Assembly: GCA_030704615.1 (NCBI GenBank)
Contig: CM060732.1
Location: 54,374,001-54,438,000 of the forward strand
Source: Takakia lepidozioides
Taxonomy: Eukaryota; Plantae; Bryophyta
DNA: 64,000 nt
Direction: 5' to 3'
Shown: positions 6,370 through 43,059 of the stretch, piece by piece
How positions within the stretch are numbered: the stretch's first letter is position 1
How the letters are laid out: every line of letters begins with the position of its first letter
The notes under the pieces: generated by a model
What the model was told of the DNA's origin: nothing
The model's database searches: none
Seen by the model: only the letters and a program-made list of their open reading frames with translations
Program-made: the position numbers and the translations under genes

Positions 6370-8022
6370 GGTCCTAGGAGCTTCCCCATGCATTATTGTC
6401 TTCATGGCTCCTCGGTGGTTATTTTTTCCACTGTTGGTACCCCTCTTTTTTAATATATTTTCAGGGCCTCCATCCGTTTTGTAAAATTTAAATTAAAACT
6501 GGTCCATGAACTACTGGTCCCTGGCTATTGTCAGAGAGTCACTTACCATCCTCTTCGTCCTGGACAAGCTAAACAACAGTCTACGGGCTTTTCCGTTCAG
6601 TATCCATCATGTGACCATGTCTCTATCCCTACAAAGTACAGTCCCTCTCTCCCTTCCTAATCTTCCCCATACTCCCATCAGAATCTGCTGCTGGTCCTCT
6701 CCCACAAGAGACATGAACCCAACTCGAGACCCTATGATCCCCATCACAACCTGGCTAGCAGCAAATTCATTCTTTTGGATTTCAGGAAGGCCCCTCGCAG
6801 ATCCAGGAGAGTGATCTTGGGCTTTCTCTAGATCTCCGACTCCCTTCTTCGCGTACACCACTAGAACAACATACAAGGCTCTGACATCTCCCAGCCCCCT
6901 CTTTGCCAAATAGAACTTGAAATGGCAATCTTACGGGTTTATGGAGGAAAATTGGAAATCAATCTGGACATGTATCTGGGAAAAAACAAGGCCAGCCAAA
7001 ATGTCCACCTTTCTATGGCAAATAGCCAACAAAGTCCTTAAGGTGGGAGAATGGTTACAATTCCAGGAAGCCTTGCTTTGCTCCTGTTGCTCCTATGGGC
7101 AGTTGGAAACCCTGGAACATTGCCTTATCTATTGCCTTACCCCTAGGAAAGTCTGGCCTATCGTAAAAGGGATACCCAAGACTTCTCAGTTGTACATCTG
7201 CTACTCAACTACGACTCAAATACAAAAACCAAGGCTTCAAACTACCCAATCTATGATTGCCTTCGCAGCTCTACACTGTGGAACATATGGAAAGTTAGAT
7301 GTGCCTAGACCCTCTCGGGTACCACCTGCACTTTATCTACCTTGCTTTCTAGAGTATTATGGGACTTGCAGATAGAAGGGAGGAAGGCTTGGGCAAAACT
7401 CTGTGCAGATGTCGCAAGAAGACCCCAACAAGCGGCAGCAATCCACAATCAACACTTGGGCAAGAAACGGTCTTATCTGCACTAGCTCGTCACCATCCCA
7501 CTGTGCTTGGGCAGCTCAACCGCCAGATCCATGGCGAGAACTCAACACACCCTTCTATGGCAGTGTCCCCCGAGTTTGATAGGGATATCAATTGGCGCCA
7601 CATCAAATCGGCTGCTAGACTGAAATTTTGCTGAGATCCATTCGTGCACACAAATAAGCTTTGGACAGGTTTCAAACGGCTGCTAAGCCATTCACCTCAT
7701 GGATTCCTTGTAGATCTCACCAGTCCAGAAGCGACTGCCTACATTCAAAGCAACCCCTATGGGTGTGACTTCAACATAGGACTTGTAACCCTAGGTTGTC
7801 TTCATCTTCTCCCTTCGGGAGGTTAGTTCTTTCATCACTGACTACGGTGTATGTACCTCATGGTGTAATCTGGGGTTTTAATTTTTTTCCCCACAATAAA
7901 CTCAATAAAATTAATTCAGGGCCTTCCCCTGTTCAAAAAATAAAATAAAATAAAAAATAAAAAATATATAGGAAAATATGAAAAAAAGATTTAAGACAAA
8001 AAGAAAAAAAAGAAAAAAAAAA
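6370..8022 (+). mobile_element. 5'-truncated, decayed L1/Tx1-like LINE (ORF2 C-terminus, 3' UTR, A-rich tail)
   Basis: ORF 6917-7375 carries a zf-RVT-type pattern (WKSIWTCIW..TRPAKMSTFLWQI...L..G..L...C..C....ETLEH...C). A long A-rich tail spans 7934-8022. The element interrupts a SINE-A copy. Confidence 0.8.
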
Positions 8023-8090
8023 TTGAGCACAACGCTCTAGGGACACTGCCCAAGGGAAGTGGGTGGGAGAAGATTATACCACACCGACAA

Positions 8091-8258
8091 CCAAGTTGTA
8101 GCCGAGTGGTAATGGGCACATACCACCTCGAAAGTGGTTGTGGGTTCAATCCACCCTTGGTGTCACAAAGGTGTCCACTTTCCTAGCGAAAGGCAGTAAC
8201 CTTTCGGGGGTGAAGAGACACCATAATATACGCTTCCTTCTGGAGGCGACAAATATAA
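8091..8258 (+). mobile_element. tRNA-derived SINE family B, copy 1
   Basis: A-box tagccgagtggtaa, B-box ggttcaatcc, structured body and AT-rich tail. Flanked by ataccaca-ccgacaa (8076-8090) and ataccacatccgacaa (8259-8274). Confidence 0.8.
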
Positions 8259-8414
8259 ATACCACATCCGACAAGGTCGCAGGATTTGAACCCAGAATCA
8301 CCTGGGTGGCACTCAGTGCTCTCAACTAAGGTTTCCTCTTAAGAAAAAAAGGAAAATAGTGAACTAATTACAATTTGCTGCACGGCAAGTCCACCGTAAG
8401 CCAGCTGCATTGCG

Positions 8415-19304: not shown

Positions 19305-19714
19305 GCATTGGCAGCTCAAGAACCTGCCTCTGAGCCTCTTTGCTTGTTTCATTGTACTTGCCAAGGAGTCTTACCTAGAAGAGAACACCCTACAGCGAAA
19401 CATGGTTTTAGACGTTACCTGTTTCTGGCTTGTCTCAATTAGGACCAGTAGGCCTACCACTTACTGGATACAAGGTTGCAGGGATACAGTGCACGCAGCC
19501 TGACAGTAAGCATTGGCAGCTCAAGAACCTGCCTCTGAGCCTCTTTGCTTGTTTCATTGTACTTGCCAAGGAGTCTTACCTAGAAGAGAACACCCTACAG
19601 CGAAACATGGTTTTAGACGTTACCTGTTTCTGGCTTGTCTCAATTAGGACCAGTAGGCCTACCACTTACTGGATACAAGGTTGCAGGGATACAGTGCACG
19701 CAGCCTGACAGTAA
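19305..19714. repeat. Perfect 205-bp tandem duplication
   Basis: 19305-19509 equals 19510-19714 by eye, with gcat microhomology at the junctions. Confidence 0.92.
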
Positions 19715-20579
19715 GCATGGCAAGGTGTGGGTGTGAAGTGCGAAGCTCAACACATGTGTGATGTTGTCAGAGAAGCTGCCCTGCAGCCATTCTGCCGTGC
19801 GAGCTAAGTGCCGACAAAAGACTGCCTCACACGCAGCTCATCAAATCGGTCTTCGTCGCCAGATATCCCATCTGCTGGCAAGTGACGGTATGCAACTGCT
19901 GAACTTGCTGCAACTTTGTAAGTCTAAACAATAAGTGCATGGAATACATGCAAGCCCTACCCTATCAATTACTGAATAGGCTGTAAAGATGATCTGAGTA
20001 GTAGATCACCAGTGCTTACACTGCCTGGAACATTCCATGACCTGGATCTGCCAGTTTTTTGCAATTGGTATCCTTTGTGCATGTCTCTCTTCTGACCCAA
20101 TAAACTACATCCTGTCCACCTATTCCATCCATCTATACATATGGATGAAATATTCCAGCTTCACAATCAAAACTGCATGGAGAATATCCGTACTAAGCAT
20201 CAAAACCCTTTGAGTAGTCCTGCCTTGGGAAGGCAGGGCCAATAAAGTGCATACATATTATAGAAGATGAAATGGATGGAAGAGGAGAGAAATTGTTTTC
20301 TCCCTTGCGTGGTAAGGGCAGAAGCCTCCTCACGTGGTTGTGGGTTCAAAACAGTGTTGCACTGGTATATAGGGTCTGGCCGGGTATCAACCAGGGTATT
20401 GAATAACCGACCCGGCTGATATTGGCAATTCCAATACTATGGTTGATAACCGGACCGGCTGGTATTGCCAAGACAATACCCGGACTTGGACCCGTATTAT
20501 GGGCAAAAATAAGGACTATACAATGGTATGAATAGGAAATTGGGCGGGTGCACATGATCTCAGGGTTAGGTAAGAGCAC

Positions 20580-21420: not shown

Positions 21421-21770
21421 TCTCACACGTTTGCCTTAAACTCGTTGGGTATACGTAGTCTATTCCCTGATATATGCTGTTTTGAAGGCTTTCAGTGACC
21501 CAATAAAAAACAGTCGACTGAATTCGAAACAACCATAAAAGGTTTCTCATGTTAATGGAAAACTTAGGGGAAACATTCAAATGAGCTAGTGTTATCGGAA
21601 GACACATAGTGAACATTGATGAAAGAAAATGTTCATGTGACTGTAATGTAATATTCAATGAAACTATAACAATGGAATGCCAGATTTGAGGAATATATAA
21701 TCCAAGCTTTAGGGCTTGGGGAATTGGTATTATATGAGGAAAAAGTTAGTTGTGGGGAAAAAGTTAAAAC

Positions 21771-24274
21771 AGAGAAAGAGAGAGAGAAGACTCCGACCGA
21801 AGCTGGCGTAACTAAGAGCCATTTCGTCTTGCGGCTATTGCCCCCTTTCAGGGGTGGGTGTCAAGGACGAGAACATGACTGAACACAAACAAGATATCAG
21901 ACTAGAGGTACAAGACTAGACAAATCAAGGTCGGTGTGGCCGAATGCATGATGGGTAATATGAATCAAGATGAGCTTTATAACAATGGACAAGAGTACAA
22001 GATACTGGAACTTGACTCGAATACTGGAATGCTGGGAACTGGACTGGGGTATTAGATACTGAAAACTGGACTGGAGTACTGGGACTGGGAACAAGAGTAG
22101 CTTGAACTTGTGTTGGCGGGATTGAAGAGTGTCCAGTCTCACCTCCTATATATACTGGCTACTATGAGGTTCCCTAAGAGGCTTCCCCAAAAGAGGTTTC
22201 TTGATGGAGAAGTTTCCAAGGTTAAACAAAGGTTTCTTGATGGAGAAGTTTCTTTAAACAAAAGAGGTATTTTGATAGAGAAGTTTCCTCCAAATGAAGC
22301 TTCCCGAGCAGTTTCCAAGTTACTTTCGGTAATTTGGTAAACTCTCGGTAACTTGGTAACTTATAGTAACTTATGGTAAATCATGATAGATCATGATAAC
22401 TTTCGATAGCATGGTAACTTGGTAACTTCTGATATTTATTCCTGATAAGTTCCTCTGGGCTATGTCCGTGACATCACCCCCTCCTCTAGCGCCGAGTTCC
22501 TTGAGGAGCAGTAAAATCTTGGACTTGCTTAGAGTTGGAGAAACTCTCTCCTTAATGTGTATCAGATACACTGAATGTGGAGTCTTCACCTTGATGGCTG
22601 ATATCTTCGTTGTGATGTTTTATTGACGTGTAGCTCGGGGATTAGCTGTATATCGTTGATGAAACTCTTGGACTTTGTCAGATGCATTGGCAAAGTTGGA
22701 TGAAGGTTCCCACGTTCGTTCGCTGATGTCGTAGCCTTTCCAATGTACGAAATATTCAAGACGTTTATACTTGATGCGAGAGTCTAGGAATTCGTCGACT
22801 TCATACTTGATTTCCTGATTGACTTCCATTGGTAGAGGTGGTACGGAAACTCTCCCTGGAATATTCGATGGATGATACAACTCCAATAATGAAACAAGAA
22901 AAACTAGATGGATGCGTATACTTGGGAGTTCAAGCCGAAAACTGACCGGATTTATTTGTCGAATAATTTTGAATGGTCCCAGACGTTGATAATCCAACTT
23001 CTTTTATGGTCACGAGGTTTGTATGTCCCGTCAAAGAAGCCACACACGATCTCCGACCTTGAACTGGGATTGGAGTTGACGATGTTGATCTGTATACTCC
23101 TTGTATTGTTTTTGAGCTTCTGCGAGGTGGAATGTAAGCTCCTTGTGAATCGTAGCAAGGTTTTCTGCAGCAGGGCTTCCAACAATCTTCATGTGGAAAT
23201 GATTTATTCGAGGATGATGACCATAATTGGAGAAAAATGAAGTTTGTTTGGTCGAAAAATGTGTAGTGTTGTTGTAGGCAAATTCAACCAATGACAGAAG
23301 GTCCGTCCAATTATCTTGGTGATAATTTATCGTACATCGAAGATACTGCTCCAAAATCTGGTTTACGCGTTCGATTTGACCATCAGTCTGTGCTAATCTT
23401 TGGTTCTCTCGTAATCTGTTGGAGAGGAACCGTTGTAGTAGGAGCTGTTGCAGTAGAGACTCGTATGGTTGAAGTTCCATTGTTCGACTCTTTTAATTCT
23501 GAAATTTGTTGTTGCAAATTGTGGAGGGCGTTGTCAAGATCTTGAGACTGATCAGCTTGTAATTGGGCGGTAGAGGTACGAAGTTCTTGCATCTGGAGCT
23601 GAAGACTCTGCAATGTGGCGACCATTTCCGCAAATGTGCCTTCCATCTTAACTAACTAAGGAACAAACTTTAGTCTCGTCAAACTGTCAAGGACGAGAAC
23701 ATGACTGAATACAAACAAGAGATCAGACTAGAGGTACAAGACTAGACAAATCAAGGTCGGCGTGGCCGAATGCATGATGGGTAATATGAATCAATATGAT
23801 CTTTATAATAATGGACAAAAGTACAAAATACTGGAACTCGACTCGAATACTGGAATGCTGGGAACTGGACTGGGGTATCAGATACTGAAAACTGGACTGG
23901 ATTACTGGGACTGGGAACAAGAGTAGCTTGAACTTGTGTTGGCGGGACTGAAGAGTGTCCAGTCTCGCCTCCTATATATACTGGCTACTAGGAGGTTCCC
24001 TAAGAGGCTTCCCTAAAAGAGGTTTCTTGATGGAGAAGTTTTTTTAAACAAATGAGGTATCTTGATAGAGAAGTTTCCTCCAAAGAAAGCTTCCCGAGCA
24101 GTTTCCCAAGTTACTCTCGGTAATTTGGTAAACTCCCGGTAACTTGATAACTAATGGTAACTTATGATAAATCATGATAGATCACGGTAATTTTCGGTAA
24201 CATGATAACTTGGTAACTTCTGGTATTTAATCCTGGTAAGTTCCTCTGGGCTATGTCCGTGACAGTGGGCCCTA
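21771..24274 (-). mobile_element. 87-nt-class mini-retroposon, copy 1, split by the LTR element
   Basis: 21771-21858 plus 24270-24274 is colinear with 25017-25103. Candidate TSD taaaac at 21765-21770 and 24275-24280. Confidence 0.75.
21859..24264 (-). mobile_element. Non-autonomous Ty3/gypsy chromovirus (Tcn1/Tf1-like) with a large internal deletion
   Basis: TG...CA LTRs at 23685-24264 (5') and 21859-22473 (3'), 5-bp TSD gtggg (21854-21858 and 24265-24269), and PPT aggagggggtga next to the 3' LTR. The 1.2-kb internal region holds the Gag N-terminus (ATG at 23646) joined to the integrase C-terminus (QTDGQIERVNQILEQYLR, GPF motif) and a chromodomain (YEVDEFLDSR...YFVHWKGY...TWEP), with frameshifts. 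Confidence 0.96.
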
Positions 24275-24577: not shown

Positions 24578-25016
24578 AGTAATATTGTAATATCATACAC
24601 ATAATAGCATTACGCCTACAAATGATAATGATGACTTGAGTTTACAAAGAGTTCCAGGTCTCATGCAATGTGGAAGTGTATAATCAGTCGCTGATGATTG
24701 ATGTGGTGTGTATCTTCTACAATGTTTCTACACCATCTACTCGTTTATATGAGTACATATACATAGATATTATGAATCATTTGTAAGATTATGATGTTCA
24801 TCTTGTTCCTTTACATCTTTCCGTTCTTGTGCTTTATGCTTCGAGCAATTTTGACGAGGTCGGCGATGAGCATAACTGCAGTCTCGCAATCATTTAGTAA
24901 ATGATACCCGTTCACAACAAGACATGCTTGTTGCACAAAACATTTTAGATTAAGCATCCATCTATTTCTTTATTGTACATAATACAAATTTGTATTGATG
25001 TTTTGGCCACTTTCTA

Positions 25017-25103
25017 GAGAGAGAGAGAGGACTCCGCCCGAGGCCAGCGTAACTAGAGTCACTTCGCCTTGCGGCTACTGCTCCCTTTCGGGGGTGGGCC
25101 CTA
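25017..25103 (-). mobile_element. 87-nt mini-retroposon, copy 2 (structured core plus (TC)n tail)
   Basis: Flanked by a perfect 13-bp TSD tggccactttcta (25004-25016 and 25104-25116). Homologous to the split copy at 21771. Confidence 0.85.
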
Positions 25104-25289
25104 TGGCCACTTTCTATTTTATATACATAAGCTTCTGTTTTCTTTGTACATGCAATGTGATTCTTTTCAATGAACACCCACCAACACAATACTAATACAA
25201 ACATGAAAAGTACTGTAAATACTATACAATGATGGGTACACATGAAAAGACATGATGGAAACTGGATCTACTCAATCCATTTTTCACTT

Positions 25290-27029: not shown

Positions 27030-27425
27030 ACAGTGACTGGGAGCACTAGCTCACAAACCAGGCCTCTTAATTGTGTGAGAGGAAAAAATAACCTCTTTAA
27101 GAATAACCTTGCCATGAGGTGCCGGGTGCCAAGCAGAAGGCTTAAGGGACACCTCCCAAGAGAAGGGGGACAAAAACGGCTTAAGGGAAACATACCACAT
27201 CAGACAACTAGCATGCAGCCCAGTGGTAATGGGCACATACCATGTTGGATGTGGTTGTGGGTTCAAACCAGGGTCTGGGGTGTCATGAAGGTGTCCATCT
27301 TTCACCTGAAAGGCAGTAGCCCTTGTGGTGAAGTGACACCATGAATTACGCTCCCTTCGGGAGGCGTTATACATATATATACCACATCCGACAATGTAGC
27401 AATATTTGAGCCCTGAATCACCTGC
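27030..27425 (-). mobile_element. SINE family A copy carrying a SINE-B insertion
   Basis: Colinear with 24349-24530 once 27208-27394 is removed. Confidence 0.75.
27208..27378 (+). mobile_element. tRNA-derived SINE family B, copy 2
   Basis: A-box cagcccagtggtaa, B-box ggttcaaacc and (AT)n tail. 16-bp TSD ataccacatc(a/c)gacaa at 27192-27207 and 27379-27394. Confidence 0.8.
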
Positions 27426-31489: not shown

Positions 31490-34400
31490 ATGCCGTCGTC
31501 GGAACCCTCATCAAGCAAGCCCAACCCACAAGGGGCTCCACGACCTCGACCAAGGACAGGTCGTGACAGTTCCCTACCGTTTCCCCCCCGCACACAGCGG
31601 GGCTCTCTTGAAGTCTTTGGTGGAGCTCCCCAGAGCGCCCTGTTACTGTCAGGGGCTTCGCCAGCCAAAGGCAGTGTGACTGATGACCAAGATGAACAGT
31701 CAAGAGCAGCTCTGTTTGGCAGTACCTCAGGGAAGAGGCAAGCACGGGGGGTTGATGCACTTCGGGGGATATCCCAGCCAGTCAAGGGAAGAGAGGGGCT
31801 TTTCAATGGACAAAGCAGCCTCAAAAAGGCAGGGGATGATTTATTGCTCCCAGAGACATCATTGGATTTGGGAAGTTTGGAGCCAAAGGCACGAGCTGCC
31901 CGCAAGGAGGATGATGAAAGCAAGCAAGCAAGGAGTGCTGCTCATCATGGACGGACGAAATCACTACAGGTGGGATGAGATCTAGGGACAATTGTTTACA
32001 TTAGAGTCTGTTAGCATTCATCGGACATGTTATTTGTTGCATTCGGTACCTCACATTCATTCTCTGCATACCCCTGCTTATTGGGTCAAAATGCTAGACA
32101 GGATGGAGCCCTCCTTGCCTTTCAGAGTTAGTGGTCTTGACCCAAGTCTACGTCTCGATTGAGGATTCAAAAGAGAACCAGAAGTATTACAGAATGCTAG
32201 TGACTGTGATAACTAGTGGGGGAAATCAGTCCTCACATGGTCTTGTTTTCATTGCCAGGCAGGAGTTGGAGAACGAGATGATGACATTCTATCGGAGAAG
32301 TCATCAGGGCACGAAGATATGACCGATGATGTGATGGCAGAAAGAGCTGCAGAGTGGGGTCTGGTTTTGAAGTCGGATGCTGACACAGGGAAGACACAAG
32401 GGGTGCAGACTCAAAAGTCTAGTGATCGCAGATCAGGGGAGCGCAGGTCTGGAGAAGACCGAACTTCAGGAACTTCGCTGACCCTTCCAACTTCCGGAAC
32501 GTCATTGAGAACGTCTGAAGCATCAGATACAGGGAGTGATGGAGCAACAAACCTGCCTAAGGTTTCACGGGAGCTTAAGGATGCACTGTCAACATTCCAA
32601 CAGACATTTGTGGTGTCTGATGCAACGCAGCTGGGTTACCCTATACTCTATGCAAGTGCTGGCTTCTTCAGCATGACCGGATACAACCCTAGAGAGGTCA
32701 TTGGCCGCAACTGGTGAGATGTCTGTTGCTTCTCGAAGCTTAGTCTCATGCCAGTTCTCAGGATGTAATAAGGTTGGCAGGTCAAGCACTGTGTGTCTCT
32801 TTATGTGTGCTCGACGGCTTTCGTGTTGTTTCTCTAACGTATCTGATATAGCACTCTTGTTTATGAAAAGTCTCTGTCCCCACAGCATCTGTGTTGTTCG
32901 CGCTCGTTTCTGACTAAATTAGAACAAGCATATGCACAAGGTCACATCTTTTGTAAAAGTAGAGGTCCAAAGTAACTGTGGTAAAATAAAAGTCAGGTTT
33001 CTTAGAATCATCTGAAGGTTGGTTGTGTGCGAGCACTGTGGAAAATTTGGGGCTAGTTTTCCATACCCTGGTGAGTAGAAACCCTCTGACTAGCTCCCTA
33101 GCCAATGGGATTTTCCCTAGTAATGTGGAACCGATGTTTTGGAGGGAGACAGTCGATGAGACACACTCCATGTTTGTTTGTGCTGCCACATCCATAATGT
33201 TTATAGGTCGAGGGGGCTATCACGGAGCTCCACCTTGTGCGTTTCTTACGAACATAGTCTTGTTCTTTCCTGATGGTTTGGTAGGTTTTCAGAGTGAGCA
33301 CAACGTCCAGCTGGTTGGACCTGGCAAGTATGTGATGACAAGTGGGGTTGGGCCATGGCAACAGCCGATTTTTGCAGGGACCTGGCACTGATCCCAGCGA
33401 TGTGGCCAAAATTCGTGAAGCATTGCAGGCAGGGAAGAACTTCTGTGGTCGTTTGCTGAACTACAAGAAAGATGGCACAGCATTCTGGAATCTGCTTACA
33501 ATTACTCCAATTAAAGATGACGAAGGCAAAATCCTCAAGTTCATAGGGTAAGCTCCTGCCCTGGTATTAAATTTGCTCCACCTACATTTGTCTCTCATTT
33601 CGGGGAAGGTGAGATGGGTTTTATTTGCCTGCATCACGAATATATTTCTTTCTGTTGAAGGGAGTTCCCACGAGATGATCAGATTGAATGATCAACCTCA
33701 AATGCAGTTGGTTATCCACAACTGGCTGTCTACAGGGACAAGAACATAGTGTTTAGGAATATAGTGTCCAGTTTCTGAGAAGATGAGGGATGGGAGGTGT
33801 ACAGAATGCAGGTGGAGGTGAGCAAGCATACAGAAGGGAAAAAGGATAAGGCCTTGCGCCCCAATGGCCTTCCTGAGTCTCTCATCAGATATGATGGTCA
33901 GTTTCAATGGTTTTTTATCTCTTAGTGTAGTGCCTTCCAGGTTTGTGCTAGTATTCTGGAGACGACGTTGACAGGCAATATTAGCTTTCTGTGTGAATCC
34001 CCCGTTCACATTTCGTCTAGCAGAAAGCAAGAGACCTGTGGGTCATTTTATCATATCTGCATTTTTCCAGCACCCCTTGTGGTCTGGTTTTAGTCTTGTC
34101 CAGCCAGTCTGTGCTGTGTCTCCTTCCCCTGACCTGTGGACTGGCTTCAGGCCATGATCTCCAATGGTTACTCGATCCTTTCTCTTTTTTTCTGCCTTCC
34201 TGTTCTTTCAAAGCATTATAGATTTACAGTTCTGCAGAGTACTCAGTTGGAATTGCTGGCTTTGTCAAACCAGTTGAAGGCTTCATTGAAGCAATTGGGC
34301 TGTGTGCAGCACGGCAGAAGGAGAGGGCCACTGAATCAGTAACAGAGTTAGTGGGGGTATTTAAAACTCCACAGCCAGTAGTCCAGGGCCTTAACAACGT

Positions 34401-37400
34401 GTCATCACAGCATGCCCTACCTTCTCTGCATTCTCAGAAGCCACTTGAAAGTGTTATGGAAGCCTCCGGGCGGGCGTCACTATCCAGTCAGCCTGATGGC
34501 TATAGGCGGACCTCAACTGAGAGATTCCCGAGAGCACGCAGTGAGTCGAAGCCCGATGCAGTTTCATATGGTGAAGGAGGTGTAAGGACAAAACACCGGT
34601 CATCTGGATTTCTCTCATTACTTGGGTATGTCATGATCTGTGTTTGAATACGTTTCCGCTGAAAGTATATCATCGTCTACAAGTTTGTTTCACATTGCAG
34701 ATACAGATCTGCTTTGTCATGAAATTGGGCAACTAAAAAACTCTGCATCACCTGATGTCAGTCCAGTGAAGGGGTATGTGGGCTGCCTTTGCGTGACCAT
34801 TCATGTTTGTGAGTCTCACCGTTGAGCATGCCTAACTTAGTGAGGTTGATGGAGGCATCCAGGCTGGCGAAGCCTCAAACACTTGAAGAGGAGGAGTTTG
34901 AGCCAGAATTGGATGATGAGTGGCCTGAGAGCCTGGATGATGTTGAAAGGACCGTAGGGATTCGCAGAGGCATTGATTTAGCAACCACCCTTGAACGGAT
35001 TGCAAAGAATTTTGTAATCACAGATCCACGACTCCCGGACAATCCAATTGTAAGTTGATTGCTCACCTTCTTGTCTTTTTATCCAAAGATTTGCAGTAGT
35101 CCGGTTGTCTTTTCCCTGTGGCTTGTGTCTTGGAAATCTCATATTCAATGCCTGTGGGAAGGGTATGGATTTGGCTATGGATTTACTATGTTTGTGGAAA
35201 GGACAAGCAAGACTTGCCGATGGTAACCACAGTGTTGATTTCACATGCATAACAGATTTTTGCTTCTGACGAGTTTTTGGAGCTGACTGAGTACTCTCGT
35301 GAGGAAATTCTTGGAAGAAATTGCAGGTAAAGGTTTGCACCGTGAATTTCTATTACTTCCACTCCTGAGTTCTTACACAGTTGGTCACATAACCAAATAA
35401 GATTCTTGGTTTCTCAGACTCGTGAAGCTCAGAATTTGTTACTGACGCTGCCCTTTCCATGGATGGATGAGGTTCTGATAGTCCACTAGGCACATCAATA
35501 CAACTGATAAAGTAGCTTTTTGGTGTAAGCACAATCGGATGTCTCTAGATGTAATGCCCCATTATTGATCTCGTGACCTGTTAGTAAAGTTCTGCTGCAT
35601 GATTTCAGGTTTTTGCAAGGACCCGACACGGATCAGAACACTGTTCAACAGATCCGTGATGCAATAGCAGCTCGCAGAGACATCACTGTCCAGTTGCTTA
35701 ACTACACCAAGAGTGGTATGCTCGTGTTTTCTTATTGTGTTTGAAGCAGTGTGTGGGGGCTTCACGCTCCAGGTTAAACAGATGTTTGAGTTCGATTATC
35801 CATTATTCCACAGTTATGATTGAATGTACATAGGGTTCCATCTGCATTTATACTGATGTCCCTTCAAGCACTCAAGTAGATGGGCACAATGATCTCTCAA
35901 TAGGAGTTTAGGCTACCAGTCACTTCACACGCTAGATTGACTCTCTGGTACTGGGGCCACACCATTTATAGCTGCTTTCACCAGGCTACCTTAATGGCAG
36001 TGCTGACAGCGTACGACTGATCAGTTGAATCATACTGCATGATATGATAATGCTGAACTCAAGTGAACTTGCAAGTTGCCTGTGTCTGTGTGGCATGCTA
36101 TGGATGTACTGGTTAGATTCTTTGGATCATAGCCTTGTGGCTGTAGAATGTGTGCCTGGTTTGCATTCATGTGGAAAGAGGTATACTTCTATGTGCTGAT
36201 GAGGTAGTTGCATGCAGGAAAGCCATTCTGGAACCTCTTCCATCTGCAGGCTATGCGAGATCATAATGTAAGTATCAACATGAATTTCATAGTCTCGTCC
36301 TTCCCTGGTAACTTGTAGCTAGATTTACTGGGATTAGGACTCCGGGGTTATTAAAGCATGAGCCAGCGGTTAGTTTACAATACAAGTATCTAACGATGAA
36401 AATTGGAGTAGAACTTGGTCCTTTCAAAGGGATTAGTTTGGATAAATGTAATCTAAAGGGAAAGGATCCACGTTGTGGTATGGCAGGGCGAGTTGCAGTA
36501 CTTTATTGGCGTGCAGCTGGATGGGAGCGAGTATATAGAACCAGAGCGCAAGCGGTTATCTGAGAAGACCGAGAAAGAGGGTGCCAAAGTGGTGCGCTTG
36601 GCTCAGACCTTGAACATGTTTAGCATCCTTTTGTCTTAGTTGCCTAGCCATTCTTTTTCCTATCTACCATTTCTCTATCAATGTGCTGTTTCTTTCCTGC
36701 ATCTCCTGATTTTACTCTCTCTCTTCTCACAACCGTCAACTTTTCTGTTTCATCACAAATGGTATGCATGTTCAGGAAGGCAGTAAGCACCTGGACGAAT
36801 TGAATATCCATAGAATGTACTCATAAGACTGTTTGCTGTAGCCTTGTGGCCATTGACCCATTGAATGTCCATAGAGTAAGCTTGGTCTGTTTGAAGTGGG
36901 GGATGAAAGTGATGGCTTTATGCCGAAATTATTCCATTCTGATGGTTTTCCTGTGGCATGTGCAGGTGCGGGAGACTGCAAGAAATATTGATGGAGCTGT
37001 GCGGGAGCTTCCAGATGCAAATCTGGTGCGCTTTCTTGTGCATATTTCATTATTTTCATCTGCCATCACAGTATGGTCTCAAGATATAGGGACACCAGAC
37101 TAGGGGAATGACAACTTTCACGGTCAAGATATTGTGTCGCCAGTTTTACTCATGTCATGAATAGCTGATTCTTTGGTCCTCCACTTTCATGTCTTTCTTT
37201 CTCTGTAATTATCTCAGCAGTCATTGGTTTATGTGATCTTGCAGAAACCTGAGGATCTTTGGTCCAAGCATTCACAAGTCGTCCATCCGAAGCCTCATAG
37301 GAAACACTCTGCCTCTTGGAATGCTATCAATAAGGTGAACCTTGTACAATTTTTGCATGCGGCAGAAATAGAATGTACTCATAAGACGACGTTTTCCGTA

Positions 37401-40400
37401 GCCTTGTGGCCATTGACCCATGGGGCAGAAATAGAGTCAGGAACAGAGGAGATAGAGAGAGAATGTGGGCGGGGGTGGATGAGTGCACTAGCAGATAAGG
37501 GCCTTTTGGTCTTGCTCAGTGTTCTAAATGGACTTGTTCTTCTGGTAGACAATCAGATAGCCTTTCTAATGCTTAAGAATCTGGCTTAGGAGGTCCAATT
37601 TCTTGTGTATTGTCTCCAGTAGGACAAAAGGTCTTCCTAGTTAGGAAAGGTTCAACTGGTCATACCATAGAACTGCAGCAGAATATTTTCCATGTACAAG
37701 TATGAACATTGTGTCGCCGGTAATGAGAGAATTGTACCACAGAATTCTGGTGGCTCAAGAGCTGGTTGTTGTCAACAGATCCGATGCAATGGACAAAAGT
37801 TGGGTTTGAAGCACTTTCGACCAATCAAGCCTCTCGGATGTGGGGATACAGGAAGGTACTTTTCCCCTGCCTCTGTATGGTCTTTAGTTCGCAGATGTAC
37901 TACATTGTGTTCCTCTTTTGCTTTCCAGATAGATGGCTTAGCATACTTAATCAGGCTAGGGATCTCCCAGCTTACACAACAGAAATCACTTCATTTCTCG
38001 TGTTCCTGTCATGAGAGTAGGAGGAAATGGGACCACCTCTTGTAGGAAAGTTCAAGTCCGTTTCAAGACCAGAAGTTCTTGGCAGCTTCACCTTCAGGAC
38101 GCACTGTCTTTTTCCTTGTTTCTAGCTATTTCTGATTAGTTCCTTTTTATGGTCCAGAATCAGAAATGCTTGGCTGCTTACCTTCAGGTGTCACTTTTCT
38201 CTAGTTCTTTCTTGTCTTTCCTGTGTTACACCCCAGAAGATTTCTTGTCTCCTTGAGGTGGTCATAACATTCTCTTTGTTACTTGAGACTAAATGTAGTG
38301 GCCTTCTGGGGGCTATGTTGTGGCACTGCAGTGTGCATCTGGTGGAGCTACGAGGGACAGGCGAAGTGTATGCCATGAAAGCCATGGATAAAAATGTGAT
38401 GTTGAATCGAAACAAGGTGTGTGTTTTTTTTCCCAAGGTCTTTCAACCTTCTTGTTTCATAGACTGATACAGTAGGTACCCTTTTTCCTCAAAATACAAT
38501 GATACAGGTAGGGATGTGTTTCGTACTTTAACTCGATCCTCTTTGCGCTGAGCCCTTACTTTCTCCCTAATCCATGGGAAACAGAAAGAGAAAAAAATGT
38601 AGTACTGATGCAAGCAGTTAATGACAGAAGAATGGTTTCACCAAGCCAGAATCATTGATAAATGAAAGCTGCCTTTTCTGTACACTTTCTTTGGCCATAT
38701 CTATTCCCATTTGCAGGCCTTACGCAGTTAAGCAGATCTTATCTGATATATATATCCCTTCAACGTAAGTCATGGAAACTATATCGGACGGCTTTTAAGT
38801 GGATGGAGGTGTGGTGGAGCAGGTCCACAGGGCCTGTGCAGAGAGGGATATTTTGGCATTGATGGATCACCCATTTTTGCCCACTCTTTATGGTTCTTTC
38901 CAGGTGCTTTTTCTTTTCCTTGTATACACTCCACTTCTTTAAGGGCTCTTCAACTTGTTGGCTTTACACTTCAATGTTTGGAACTAGTCTTACATCTGAT
39001 GAATTGGTACATTGATAGAAGATCTGGGGGTGGCAACCAGTAAGCACTTGGTAATTTTAGACCAAACAAGTAACACAGCTCAAATACATACATGCAGTAT
39101 AGGTGGTGGAGCAACATGTCAGATCGTGTCTGTGATATCTGTACACCGTAGGTCTGCTATAGTAATGGACACACGGTGAGGGAAGATTCTAGGCGACAAA
39201 TGGGAGCCACTACCACCACTGAAGCTCGGATATGTTGTGGTATGTAGTGGCTTAAGTAATGCTTAAGAAGGGTTGTGTGCGAGAGAGAGAGTGAGATGCT
39301 GACATGAAGACATCAAAAGGTCACTCATTTCAAATTTCACATGCGGGACATGCAGACACAAACGCATGTGTGCTTAATTACAGATTTTTGTCCGGGCGGC
39401 GAGTTGTTTTTGCTTCTTGAAAGGCAACCTCGAAAAGTCTTTTCAGAAGAGGCAGCTCGGTACGGCCCCCTACTTCCTATCTTGGTTCTGTTTATAGACT
39501 TTCAATTACAAACTTATGTGTTATGTGACTCCTTAGTGCTATTTGTGTGCGCTCTTTTTCACTCTCGTGTTTTTCTGGTCCTCTGAGGATTATATAGGAC
39601 TGCTTTGTATTCCCAAAGGGGGGCTCCAACTGGGCATCCAAGGAGAGGTTGCCTGTATCAGTCCTGTGTGCTAGGATAGTCTTTCCATCTTCAATATCCC
39701 AGCAGCCTTCAAGCCTAGCACCTGCCACCATTTCTTACACTGCAGCACAGACCTTGGACCGGACATTTTTCCTGAATTATGTCGTCCATGGTTTCCACTT
39801 CCATTTTATATCAAATGCAAACATATTCTGCAGGTTTTTTGCAGCTGAGGTTGTCATTGCGCTCGAATATTTGCATTGTTTGGGTGCGTACTTACCCTCT
39901 TCTTGATTCAACTCTGAGATTAGAATGTGAGTCCAGAATTGAGGTCCTGTACTTCCAGCAGGTTTCCAACTCTTTCTGACTCGCGAAGTGTAAATTTGCA
40001 TGTCCTTCGTCAAGGGAAGAAGAACTAACTTGTTTCCTGTGAGATTCGTGACATATGAGTGTTAGAAGTCATCTGCAAGTGTAGAGATGCCACGTCTGGG
40101 TAACTGAGTGGCAACTCTTATTTGTTGGAACACATCACTTGAGTGGGATGGGACACATTTGCACAATGGTTGAATGTGTGCTTAAGCCTCATGTGTCCCA
40201 CCACCTCAGCCCAAGTAACCACGAATATAGTAGAAGTATATGGCAGATTTGGATTTCGAAAGTTGCATATCTAGAGATAATAGCCGATCCACATGCTCAA
40301 AATCTGCCTTTGGAAGGGATCAACAGAGAGGATGGGAAGGGGGAAACACGTACATGAATATTTGATGCTGAGAGGAACTGGGAATGCAGGGGTTGTATAC

Positions 40401-43059
40401 AGAGACTTGAAGCCAGAAAATGTGCTGCTTCAGGCGAACGGACATGTGCAACTTACTGATTTCGACTTGTCCTTTTTGACTTCCTCCAGACCTCAGGTTT
40501 GCCAAGTCTCCTACTTTCTGTGTCTTTCTGAGCAACTTGATACCTGGATATCTCGGGTGCTGCATGGACAAACATTAAGTAATGGAGTGCCAGTTGTGCA
40601 GACAAGAAATGAACTCACCCTCCAATTATGCCAACATGTAAATGGATGTACATGGGACAATGGTATCAACTAATGCAATTCAATATGTAAGTAGTCATTA
40701 TTGAGCAACCTAAATTCAAGGCTCACAAAGCATGTGTGTGCATGCATGTGAATCATTTTCAACAAGATATTTGTGATGACATTGTCGTAAGGATGACCAT
40801 GACTAAAGTTTCTGTATCAATTGATGCCATGTGTGTTCCATGCGGATCTATATCCAAACTGTATATCCGACCATTACCTGACATGTATATATCCGACTCT
40901 ATATCCGACTACTACCTGATGCGTAAATATCCAACTTTATATCCGATTATCCGACTGGTATATCTGACTCTATGTCTGCTCAATATACAAGCATTTTTTT
41001 GGACACGCAGTGTCTGATTTTGAAGGGAGTTACTGCCTGGACCCACTGCATTCTCTGTGTTTCTTCTATTCACCAATTAGTACAACCCCGGAGGGAGAGA
41101 TCAAAAGAGAGATGGCTGATGGTAATGAGGAAAGGATGAATGTGCAGCTGGTCACTCCGGACCCACCAGTTGGGCGCCGTAAGAAATCCAAGCAGCCGCA
41201 GCTCCCCTTCTTTGTTGCAGAGCCAGCCACACCCTCCAATTCCTTTGTTGGGACCGAGGAGTACATTGCCCCTGTATGTTCTGGCCCACCTCCTTGGCTG
41301 TTTTCTTTTCCTTCCTTTCTGGCAGTGTTACATATGTGTAAGAAAGTTTCTGGATACCTGGATAGGTGCGACAGATCTTTTACCGGAGACTGACCACCTG
41401 CAATGGTGTTTCATCTTCCTGGATGATGTCAGACAGGCCCTGCCAACTAGGTACATGGACAGATGGTGGTGTATGCGAGTCATAAGAGACAGCTTTCCTT
41501 CTAATGAATCCTTTGTATGGGCATTTTTTTTAGGGGAGAAAGAGCCTTCAAGTTGGCATTTTAGTTTATCCAAATGAATAGTTGTGAGTGTTCAATGAAT
41601 GTCAAAATGTCATGGTGGCATTCTTATGATGTGTCGGTTCATTTTTTAACATGTCGATGATGGATTTGATGGATATGACGGGTGTGGGTTTGCAGGAAAT
41701 TATCACCGGGCAAGGGCACAGCAGTGCTGTGGATTGGTGGGCTCTTGGTAGGTTGATTGAAGTAGAATGTTCTGTTGGGTCTAGGCGAGAAAACCTGTCC
41801 GATACTTTTACAACACCAGACATTTAGTGTAGTTTAACTCCTCAAGATGAATTTGTGCTTGGTTCCTTGCTCAGTGGCTGATAGAAGGCCAGTTCTTGTG
41901 TTTGTGTTCCGAATAATTTGTGTTCTTGTTCTTTGTTTTTGTATACGACTCTATCATTGCCATCCTCCTTAGCTTTGTTTGCTGATTATTGCAGGTTCAC
42001 TGTGAAGACTAGTTCCAGAAACCCTTGCGGCAGAAATATTTACTAGTGAAAGTGCCTAATTTAAATAGTACAGTACGTACTGTTATCCTAATTTGTGCTC
42101 AAGGGACATTCGTCTTATGTTCTCCTTGAATAACTTCTGTGTGGGTCGTACCATCTTTGTAACTGTGGCAGGAATATTGATATATGAGATGCTATTTGGG
42201 CGCACTCCGTTTCGGGGGCGCAACAGGCAAAAAACATTTGCGAATGTGCTCAACAAAGATATAGTTTTCCCTGCAAGCATCCCTGTAAGTAGAGTCTATT
42301 TTTCCAATTTCTGATTAGGAACGATTGATCATTAGACCGATCAGACACACTTGTGAGACTCGTAGGGTGCCTCAAAGATATTTGCTATTGTACCAGGGGT
42401 GGTAAGTAATGTAGATCTTTGTTTCAAGCCTTTCAGTCTAAGCTGAAGAAGTGCCAGTAACAGCTTTCAAAGTGCTGCGTATGCCCCTCAAGGTGTGTTG
42501 TCAGATGTTTGGTAAGTAGACTGTGTATACCTTGTAACCATGGGCATTGGCAGCCATATTGTGTGTCCATACACTGGCACAAAAGTGCATGCGGGCAAAT
42601 CAGGTTTGACTCAGAAGCGTTATGTATGGGATACTGTGCAGGTAAGTTTAGCAGCAAGGCAATTGATGCGATCTCTCTTGCAAAGGGACCCAAACAAGAG
42701 GCTGGGGTCAAACCGCGGTTCCAATGATTTGAAAACCCATCCCTTTTTTCGTGGCATCAATTGGCCACTCATCCGTTGCATGGTTTGCCATCTGTTCCCC
42801 TTTACTGTACTTCTGTTTGCTTTCGTACTTTTAATGTTCTTCTGTTTTCCCCCTTTAAGGTAGTCTGGTAATTCAGGCTTCATTCCCCCTATATGAAGTT
42901 CAGGGTTGAAAAGTAGTGTTTGTGTGACAGATGCCTCCACCCCTAGAGACTCCGTTGTACCTCACTACCAGAGAACCAGAAAGTGGCACCAGAGGACCAG
43001 AAGAACTGGACTGGGATGAGTTTGAAGCAGCCTCCACTTTCACTTCGGATGTGTTTTAG
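31490..43059 (+). CDS. PHOT: Phototropin blue-light receptor kinase (LOV1-LOV2-Jalpha-AGCVIII kinase), about 1086 aa, 23 coding exons
   Basis: Exons 31490-31969, 32259-32713, 33365-33547, 33805-33896, 34310-34625, 34863-35049, 35256-35326, 35609-35715, 36218-36267, 36487-36591, 36966-37025, 37245-37334, 37779-37855, 38332-38416, 38823-38903, 39356-39459, 39834-39883, 40390-40496, 41148-41273, 41696-41747, 42172-42284, 42642-42782, 42931-43059; 3261 nt in frame, all introns GT-AG. Motifs: [11 protein letters not shown], two [38 protein letters not shown] and [14 protein letters not shown]. Confidence 0.97.
36815..36859. mobile_element. 45-bp mini-insertion with a 16-bp TSD in PHOT coding intron 10
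   Basis: TSD attgaat(a/g)tccataga at 36799-36814 and 36860-36875. Confidence 0.8.
37373..37419. mobile_element. 47-bp mini-insertion with a 16-bp TSD in PHOT coding intron 12
   Basis: TSD atg(c/g)ggcagaaataga at 37357-37372 and 37420-37435. Same ends as 36815-36859. Confidence 0.8.
40848..40980. repeat. Degenerate tatatccgac array in PHOT intron 18
   Basis: About eight imperfect tat(a)tcc(g/a)a(c/t) units. Confidence 0.75.

Follow-up and report, generated by a model that had tools for sequence, protein, structure and literature searches.

Two short retroposition-type insertions in introns of a phototropin gene of Takakia lepidozioides

The phototropin gene and its two intronic inserts

We analyzed a 64,000-nucleotide stretch of the Takakia lepidozioides genome (GenBank assembly GCA_030704615.1, contig CM060732.1, positions 54,374,001 to 54,438,000 of the forward strand), referred to here as the window. 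It contains a phototropin gene with two short insertions, copy 1 (45 nt) and copy 2 (47 nt), in its introns. The phototropin exons identified in the window span positions 32319-42863. The gene was assigned from exons searched singly and not from a joined protein: the LOV1 exon matches PDB 2z6c (2.4e-21), the LOV2/J-alpha exon matches 4hhd, and the kinase exon matches Pfam Pkinase. The flanking exons (36487-36591, 36966-37025, and 37245-37334) have clean translations and thereby place both inserts within introns; copy 2 starts 22 nt past a 5' splice site. The intron-spanning open reading frame (ORF) at 37224-37586, considered as an empty-site check, is not on record and has no relatives in the protein database. 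The inserts and their target-site duplications are the following, with a slash for a nick.

36799-36814, no strand: left target-site duplication of copy 1 (ATTGAATATCCATAGA), 15/16 identical to 36860-36875
36815-36859, probably minus strand: insert copy 1, 45 nt, with the minus-strand reading GGGTCAATGGCCACAAGGCTAC..CTTA TGA GTACAT
36860-36877, no strand: right target-site duplication of copy 1 (ATTGAATGTCCATAGA, 36860-36875) plus GT; ATAGA/GT is the proposed first nick, on the plus strand
37357-37372, no strand: left target-site duplication of copy 2 (ATGCGGCAGAAATAGA)
37373-37419, probably minus strand: insert copy 2, 47 nt, with the same ends as copy 1 and, in the middle, a 2-nt indel and three substitutions
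37420-37437, no strand: right target-site duplication of copy 2 (ATGGGGCAGAAATAGA, 37420-37435) plus GT

Each insert is bracketed by a 16-bp direct repeat which is 15/16 identical at both loci and differs in sequence between them. The repeat of copy 2 can also be read as 17 bp, with a matching C in front. The two inserts share 42 of 47 aligned positions (89%) and agree fully over the first 15 and the last 22 bases. The 22-mer GTAGCCTTGTGGCCATTGACCC occurs four times in the window with up to three mismatches, against 0.00 occurrences expected. Copies 1 and 2 are oriented alike, 558 bp from each other. Beyond the 16-bp repeats their flanks are unrelated, indicating two events rather than one duplicated block. 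The two target sites have AT-N9-ATAGA in common, followed by GT, and differ in their middles. This pattern occurs with the GT at three sites in the window, where 0.54 would be expected, and two of the three carry the inserts. The insertions, the duplications, the identical ends, and the common target motif are read directly from the sequence, in agreement with the original prediction, which had described two separate insertion events with a shared target pattern.

No terminal inverted repeat was found at either short insert by reading the window and by a repeat search, and the insert ends ATGTACTCAT and GGGTCAATGG (the latter being the reverse complement of the right end) are unrelated. The short inserts were also read without finding poly(A). 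They have neither a tRNA-like head nor an RNA polymerase III promoter, and ARAGORN finds no tRNA in the window, so that they do not classify as a short interspersed nuclear element (SINE). In Rfam, no family matched anywhere in the window at the gathering threshold. These negatives bear out the expectation of an element with no inverted ends, poly(A) tail, or promoter. At the E-value threshold, Rfam listed FMR1-AS1_1 as a sequence-only match scoring 22.8 bits where the gathering score is 40, with an E-value of about 0.02 for 731 bases, which we took as chance.

Unique sequence duplicated over 16 bp at each site, combined with the lack of inverted ends, indicates target-primed reverse transcription by the enzyme of a long interspersed nuclear element (LINE). 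The two inserts are thus separate retroposition-type insertions with the marks of this mechanism. Their small size and flanking direct repeats would also suit a cut-and-paste DNA transposon of the miniature inverted-repeat type (MITE) or its footprint. However, we regard this as extremely improbable, since the inserts show no terminal inverted repeats and their duplication of 16 bp falls outside the 2-11 bp expected of such elements. The duplication is longer than that of any DNA transposon superfamily known to us.

Further sites in the window resemble the targets. The remaining AT-N9-ATAGAGT site is at 40967-40984 on the minus strand (ATTGAGCAGACATAGAGT); it is unoccupied and also lies inside the phototropin exon span. 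At 35819-35836, 1 kb upstream in another intron of the gene, ATTGAATGTACATAGGGT agrees at 16 of 18 positions with the target duplication of copy 1 and its GT. The pattern of this duplication plus GT is found at only three sites in the window, with 0.14 expected. The look-alike at 35819-35836 was not significant in an alignment test of intron against intron (p 0.04-0.27).

Relatives of the inserts within and outside the window

Two longer and older relatives of the inserts, announced by the original prediction, do exist near the start of the window.

2413-2500, probably minus strand: LongA, with a 12-nt insertion and AGA in place of TGA
2690-2764, probably minus strand: LongB, with the minus-strand core followed by TCTCT and about 20 bases in common with LongA

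The core of LongB (2714-2760) is 89% identical to each short copy, which is the same level as between the short copies, and LongA reaches 63-68% identity in the core. Past the ATGTACTC end, both long copies continue for about 25 nt (..GGGG..AGCCGTCAAGAGA), and past the GACCC end for about 4 nt (CGCG). As also predicted, the AGA of the left junction gives microhomology to the target. No target duplication is visible at LongA or LongB. They have the same orientation and are 276 bp apart. A possible decayed third copy between them (about 2578-2597) reached p about 0.05 and was not accepted. Although the family has only four copies in 64 kb, these form two pairs, each with a common orientation and with spacings of 276 bp and 558 bp. 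The pairing suggests local re-insertion or local duplication.

The arrangement in pairs raises the question of whether one short copy was templated from the other, in either direction, through microhomology at both junctions (ATAGA and AT). In that case the target motif would be nothing but the flanks of the neighbor. The same orientation of the short copies at 558 bp, the common bases lying exactly at both junctions, and the similar pairing of the long copies fit this explanation. However, copies 1 and 2 retain different subsets of LongB-like states, which points to a common outside source. Templated repair alone makes no second 16-bp duplication either, and the GT following ATAGA is left unaccounted for. 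We consider templated copying very unlikely.

In a metagenome scan, eight contigs were recovered: five of one plant-like locus (L002, L003, L005, L007, and L008; GC content about 0.42) and three bacterial chance matches. The plant-like locus carries a relative of 30-35 nt which has the end ..GTAGCCTTGTGGCCATAGACCC, followed by AT, in common with the family; the other end is not shared. There is no clear duplication around this copy, and neither a further copy nor a LINE ORF is present in the five contigs. Scans of the prokaryote-genome and viral collections gave no relatives. All comparisons of the ends below therefore cover five copies, four in the window and one at the metagenome locus.

The original prediction had also connected the inserts to SINE-B of the window, by a resemblance to the SINE-B core and by 16-bp target duplications hinting at the same enzyme. 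Neither connection is supported. Local alignments of the short and long copies with SINE-B and SINE-A were no better than shuffles (best p = 0.026, uncorrected, in 32 comparisons). The two 16-bp duplications of SINE-B are one same 16-mer inside SINE-A and so give no independent evidence of a shared enzyme. Shuffle tests likewise revealed no significant similarity, on either strand, between the insert family and an 88-nt retroposon of the window (25017-25104).

This 88-nt element provided a positive control. We compared its copies (25010-25112 and 21770-21870) with SINE-B (8076-8275 and 27192-27392) and found that it aligns collinearly with the SINE-B 3' half in reverse complement only, with a score of 49 that was reached by 0/2000 shuffles. 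The sense strand of the 88-nt element is therefore the minus strand here, and its 3' end is (TC)n; SINE-B has the same tail module. The 88-nt element and the SINE-B tail resemble our inserts in being promoter-less and short, with fixed ends and a target duplication. In contrast, the insert family has no significant sequence similarity to them and is not collinear with the SINE-B 3' half.

Strand and origin of the inserts

We somewhat favor the explanation that the inserts are tail-only copies, comprising the last 45-47 bases, of a resident LINE which has no poly(A) and whose sense strand is the minus strand here. We infer the strand, which LINE was the parent, and why the 5' end is fixed. Each of the four window copies, read on the minus strand, has a stop TGA (AGA in LongA), then exactly 6 nt, and then TCT[A/C]T. 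The layouts are TGA+GTACAT+TCTAT in both short copies, TGA+GTATAT+TCTCT in LongB, and AGA+GTACAG+TCTCT in LongA. Read this way, neither end varies among the four window copies, and the metagenome copy retains the GGGTC end only. This GGGTC end is constant within one base across the five copies. Reading by eye, LongB and copy 2 have a common open frame ending ..GHKAT.N.VL-stop, and the 12-nt insertion of LongA preserves the frame.

The target sites point to the same strand. They have seven bases in common at one nick (ATAGA/GT) and two at the other (AT/). In target-primed reverse transcription, the first nick is normally the specific one. The seven common bases would therefore place the 3' end of the element at ATAGA and thus the element on the minus strand. 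The parent LINE would then have the 3' end ..CTTATGAGTACAT.

Insertion could have proceeded as follows. The LINE endonuclease would nick the plus strand at ATAGA/GT, and the freed ...AGA-3' would pair with UCU at or just past the RNA 3' end (..UGA GUACAU UCU..) and prime the complementary DNA (cDNA). The cDNA would stop after about 45 nt at the fixed GGGUC, just past a small hairpin, UGGCC-ACAA-GGCUA. A second-strand nick would follow 16 nt off, after ..AT, and fill-in would produce the 16-bp duplication. The fixed 5' end may mark where the reverse transcriptase stops on reaching the border of its own RNA handle, or the RNA itself may have a defined end.

Several observations weigh against a minus-strand tail. 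None of the window copies runs into a LINE body, and the window has no RTE-type ORF. In folding, neither strand of the short copies was more stable than shuffles (z -1.4 to +0.3). On the plus strand, the long copies have a stop codon near the GACCC end too (CCA TAG ACCCCG), so that a stop followed by six bases is weak as an argument by itself. On the minus strand they share about 25 bases past TCTCT, which require an extra assumption such as local duplication, read-through, or an older, longer 3' untranslated region. In addition, GACCC is the sole end common to all five copies, one of them in another plant. AT comes directly after it in each of the three younger copies (directly before it in the minus sense), which a minus-strand tail leaves without explanation. 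The opposite end falls into three length classes, as expected of a series of 5' truncations on the plus strand.

These observations open the way to an element inserted by the same mechanism in the plus sense, with a fixed 3' end ..GGCCAT[A/T]GACCC and 5'-truncated copies of 30-35, 45-47, and 75-88 nt. We hold this to be possible, if rather unlikely. The identical stop of the short copies would result from microhomology-mediated 5' joining, in which the target ..ATAGA-3' annealed to the cDNA of an internal AGAGA. The long copies extend leftwards with ..AGCCGTCAAGAGA, and their AGAGA sits exactly where the short copies meet ATAGA. By reading, every copy has a hairpin (UAGCC-UUGU-GGCCA) 8 nt from the GACCC end, as in stringent LINE/SINE tails. 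Moreover, 5' truncation with microhomology is well documented (PMC2912911; bioRxiv 10.1101/2022.11.04.512097). However, the second nick, which is normally unspecific, would have to match at seven bases (ATAGA/GT) in two events, and the microhomology covers AGA only. There is no known parent with such a 3' end, and the long copies go 4 nt past GACCC (CGCG). The minus-strand layout of stop, six bases, and TCT would also have to be a coincidence.

The constancy of the ends can be explained in yet another way. The original prediction had proposed that a very short, precisely ended RNA was retroposed by target-primed reverse transcription. The type of insertion stands, but a free-standing RNA of 45 nt is doubtful, because the facts are also explained by a copy of just the tail of a longer parent. 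Such an RNA, of about 45-50 nt, would be a processed RNA fragment or a promoter-less, minimal retroposon, and a LINE enzyme preferring a two-part target would copy it whole. In its favor, the two short copies agree at both ends, and the GGGTC end stays the same within one base in five copies. The 88-nt retroposon described above is also promoter-less and has a fixed 5' end. However, fixed ends are equally predicted by a reverse-transcriptase stop plus microhomology. We found no promoter, RNA family, or stable fold for such an RNA, the long copies overrun one end, and the clean copies number only two. We thus give it a small chance.

A tail-only LINE copy has counterparts in known systems. The 5'-truncated copies of L1 and of plant RTE elements show microhomology at their junctions (PMC2912911; bioRxiv 10.1101/2022.11.04.512097). 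Our inserts are like them in having a duplication within the 7-20 bp range, no inverted ends, the terminal part only, and junction microhomology. They differ in being just 45-47 nt long, in stopping at the same point in independent events, in lacking a poly(A) or (TTG)n tail, and in having a putative parent LINE.

Among LINEs that target microsatellites are the TC-repeat-specific elements of fish. In our family, as in microsatellite- or sequence-targeting LINEs, the element 3' end adjoins a fixed short motif, here TCT[A/C]T. The targets of the inserts, on the other hand, are single ATAGA sites in unique intron DNA and not repeat tracts. General background on LINEs of this kind, whose primer anneals to a short 3' tail, is available (PMC4640811, PMC3747384).

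Neighboring features and implications for LINE integration

The window contains other repeats and one further gene. A decayed long terminal repeat (LTR) retrotransposon occupies 21859-24264, with two LTRs of roughly 600 bp (21859-22473 and 23685-24264) that are 88% identical. By eye, its minus-strand ORFs look like a chromodomain and an integrase C-terminus. The second copy of the 88-nt element adjoins the outer edge of one of these LTRs. An L1-type LINE remnant (6917-7375 and 7940-8025; Pfam zf-RVT, 1.6e-07), followed by an A-rich tail, lies beside nested SINE-A/SINE-B copies. At 19305-19722, a 214-bp unit is duplicated in tandem almost perfectly (99.5% identity). A DYW-type PPR gene runs off the window start (1-1698) and has three 303-bp internal repeats in its PPR array. 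The best database matches of its protein, from a lycophyte, Ginkgo, Sphagnum, and Ceratodon, are at most 59% identical.

Taken alone, the phototropin locus amounts to a minor, neutral scar in two introns, and the pair of tiny retro-insertions is most likely a variant of a known process. A tentative extension, which we consider improbable at present, is that the unit of 45-50 nt is a self-contained minimal substrate of the LINE enzyme, i.e., an RNA 'handle'. Its 5' boundary, GGGUC, would be base-exact and conserved between two distant plants, and its target would have two parts (AT, 9 bases, and ATAGA/GT, with a 16-nt stagger). The GGGUC boundary would correspond to the reverse-transcriptase footprint on the bound RNA or to a site of processing. 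If this is true, insertion of the handle alone would be a regular outcome of target-primed reverse transcription and not a random truncation. If one stop point is common to many copies, these would reveal where the reverse transcriptase of a plant LINE releases its RNA handle, and they would show how far a short target motif and a fixed 16-nt stagger dictate integration.

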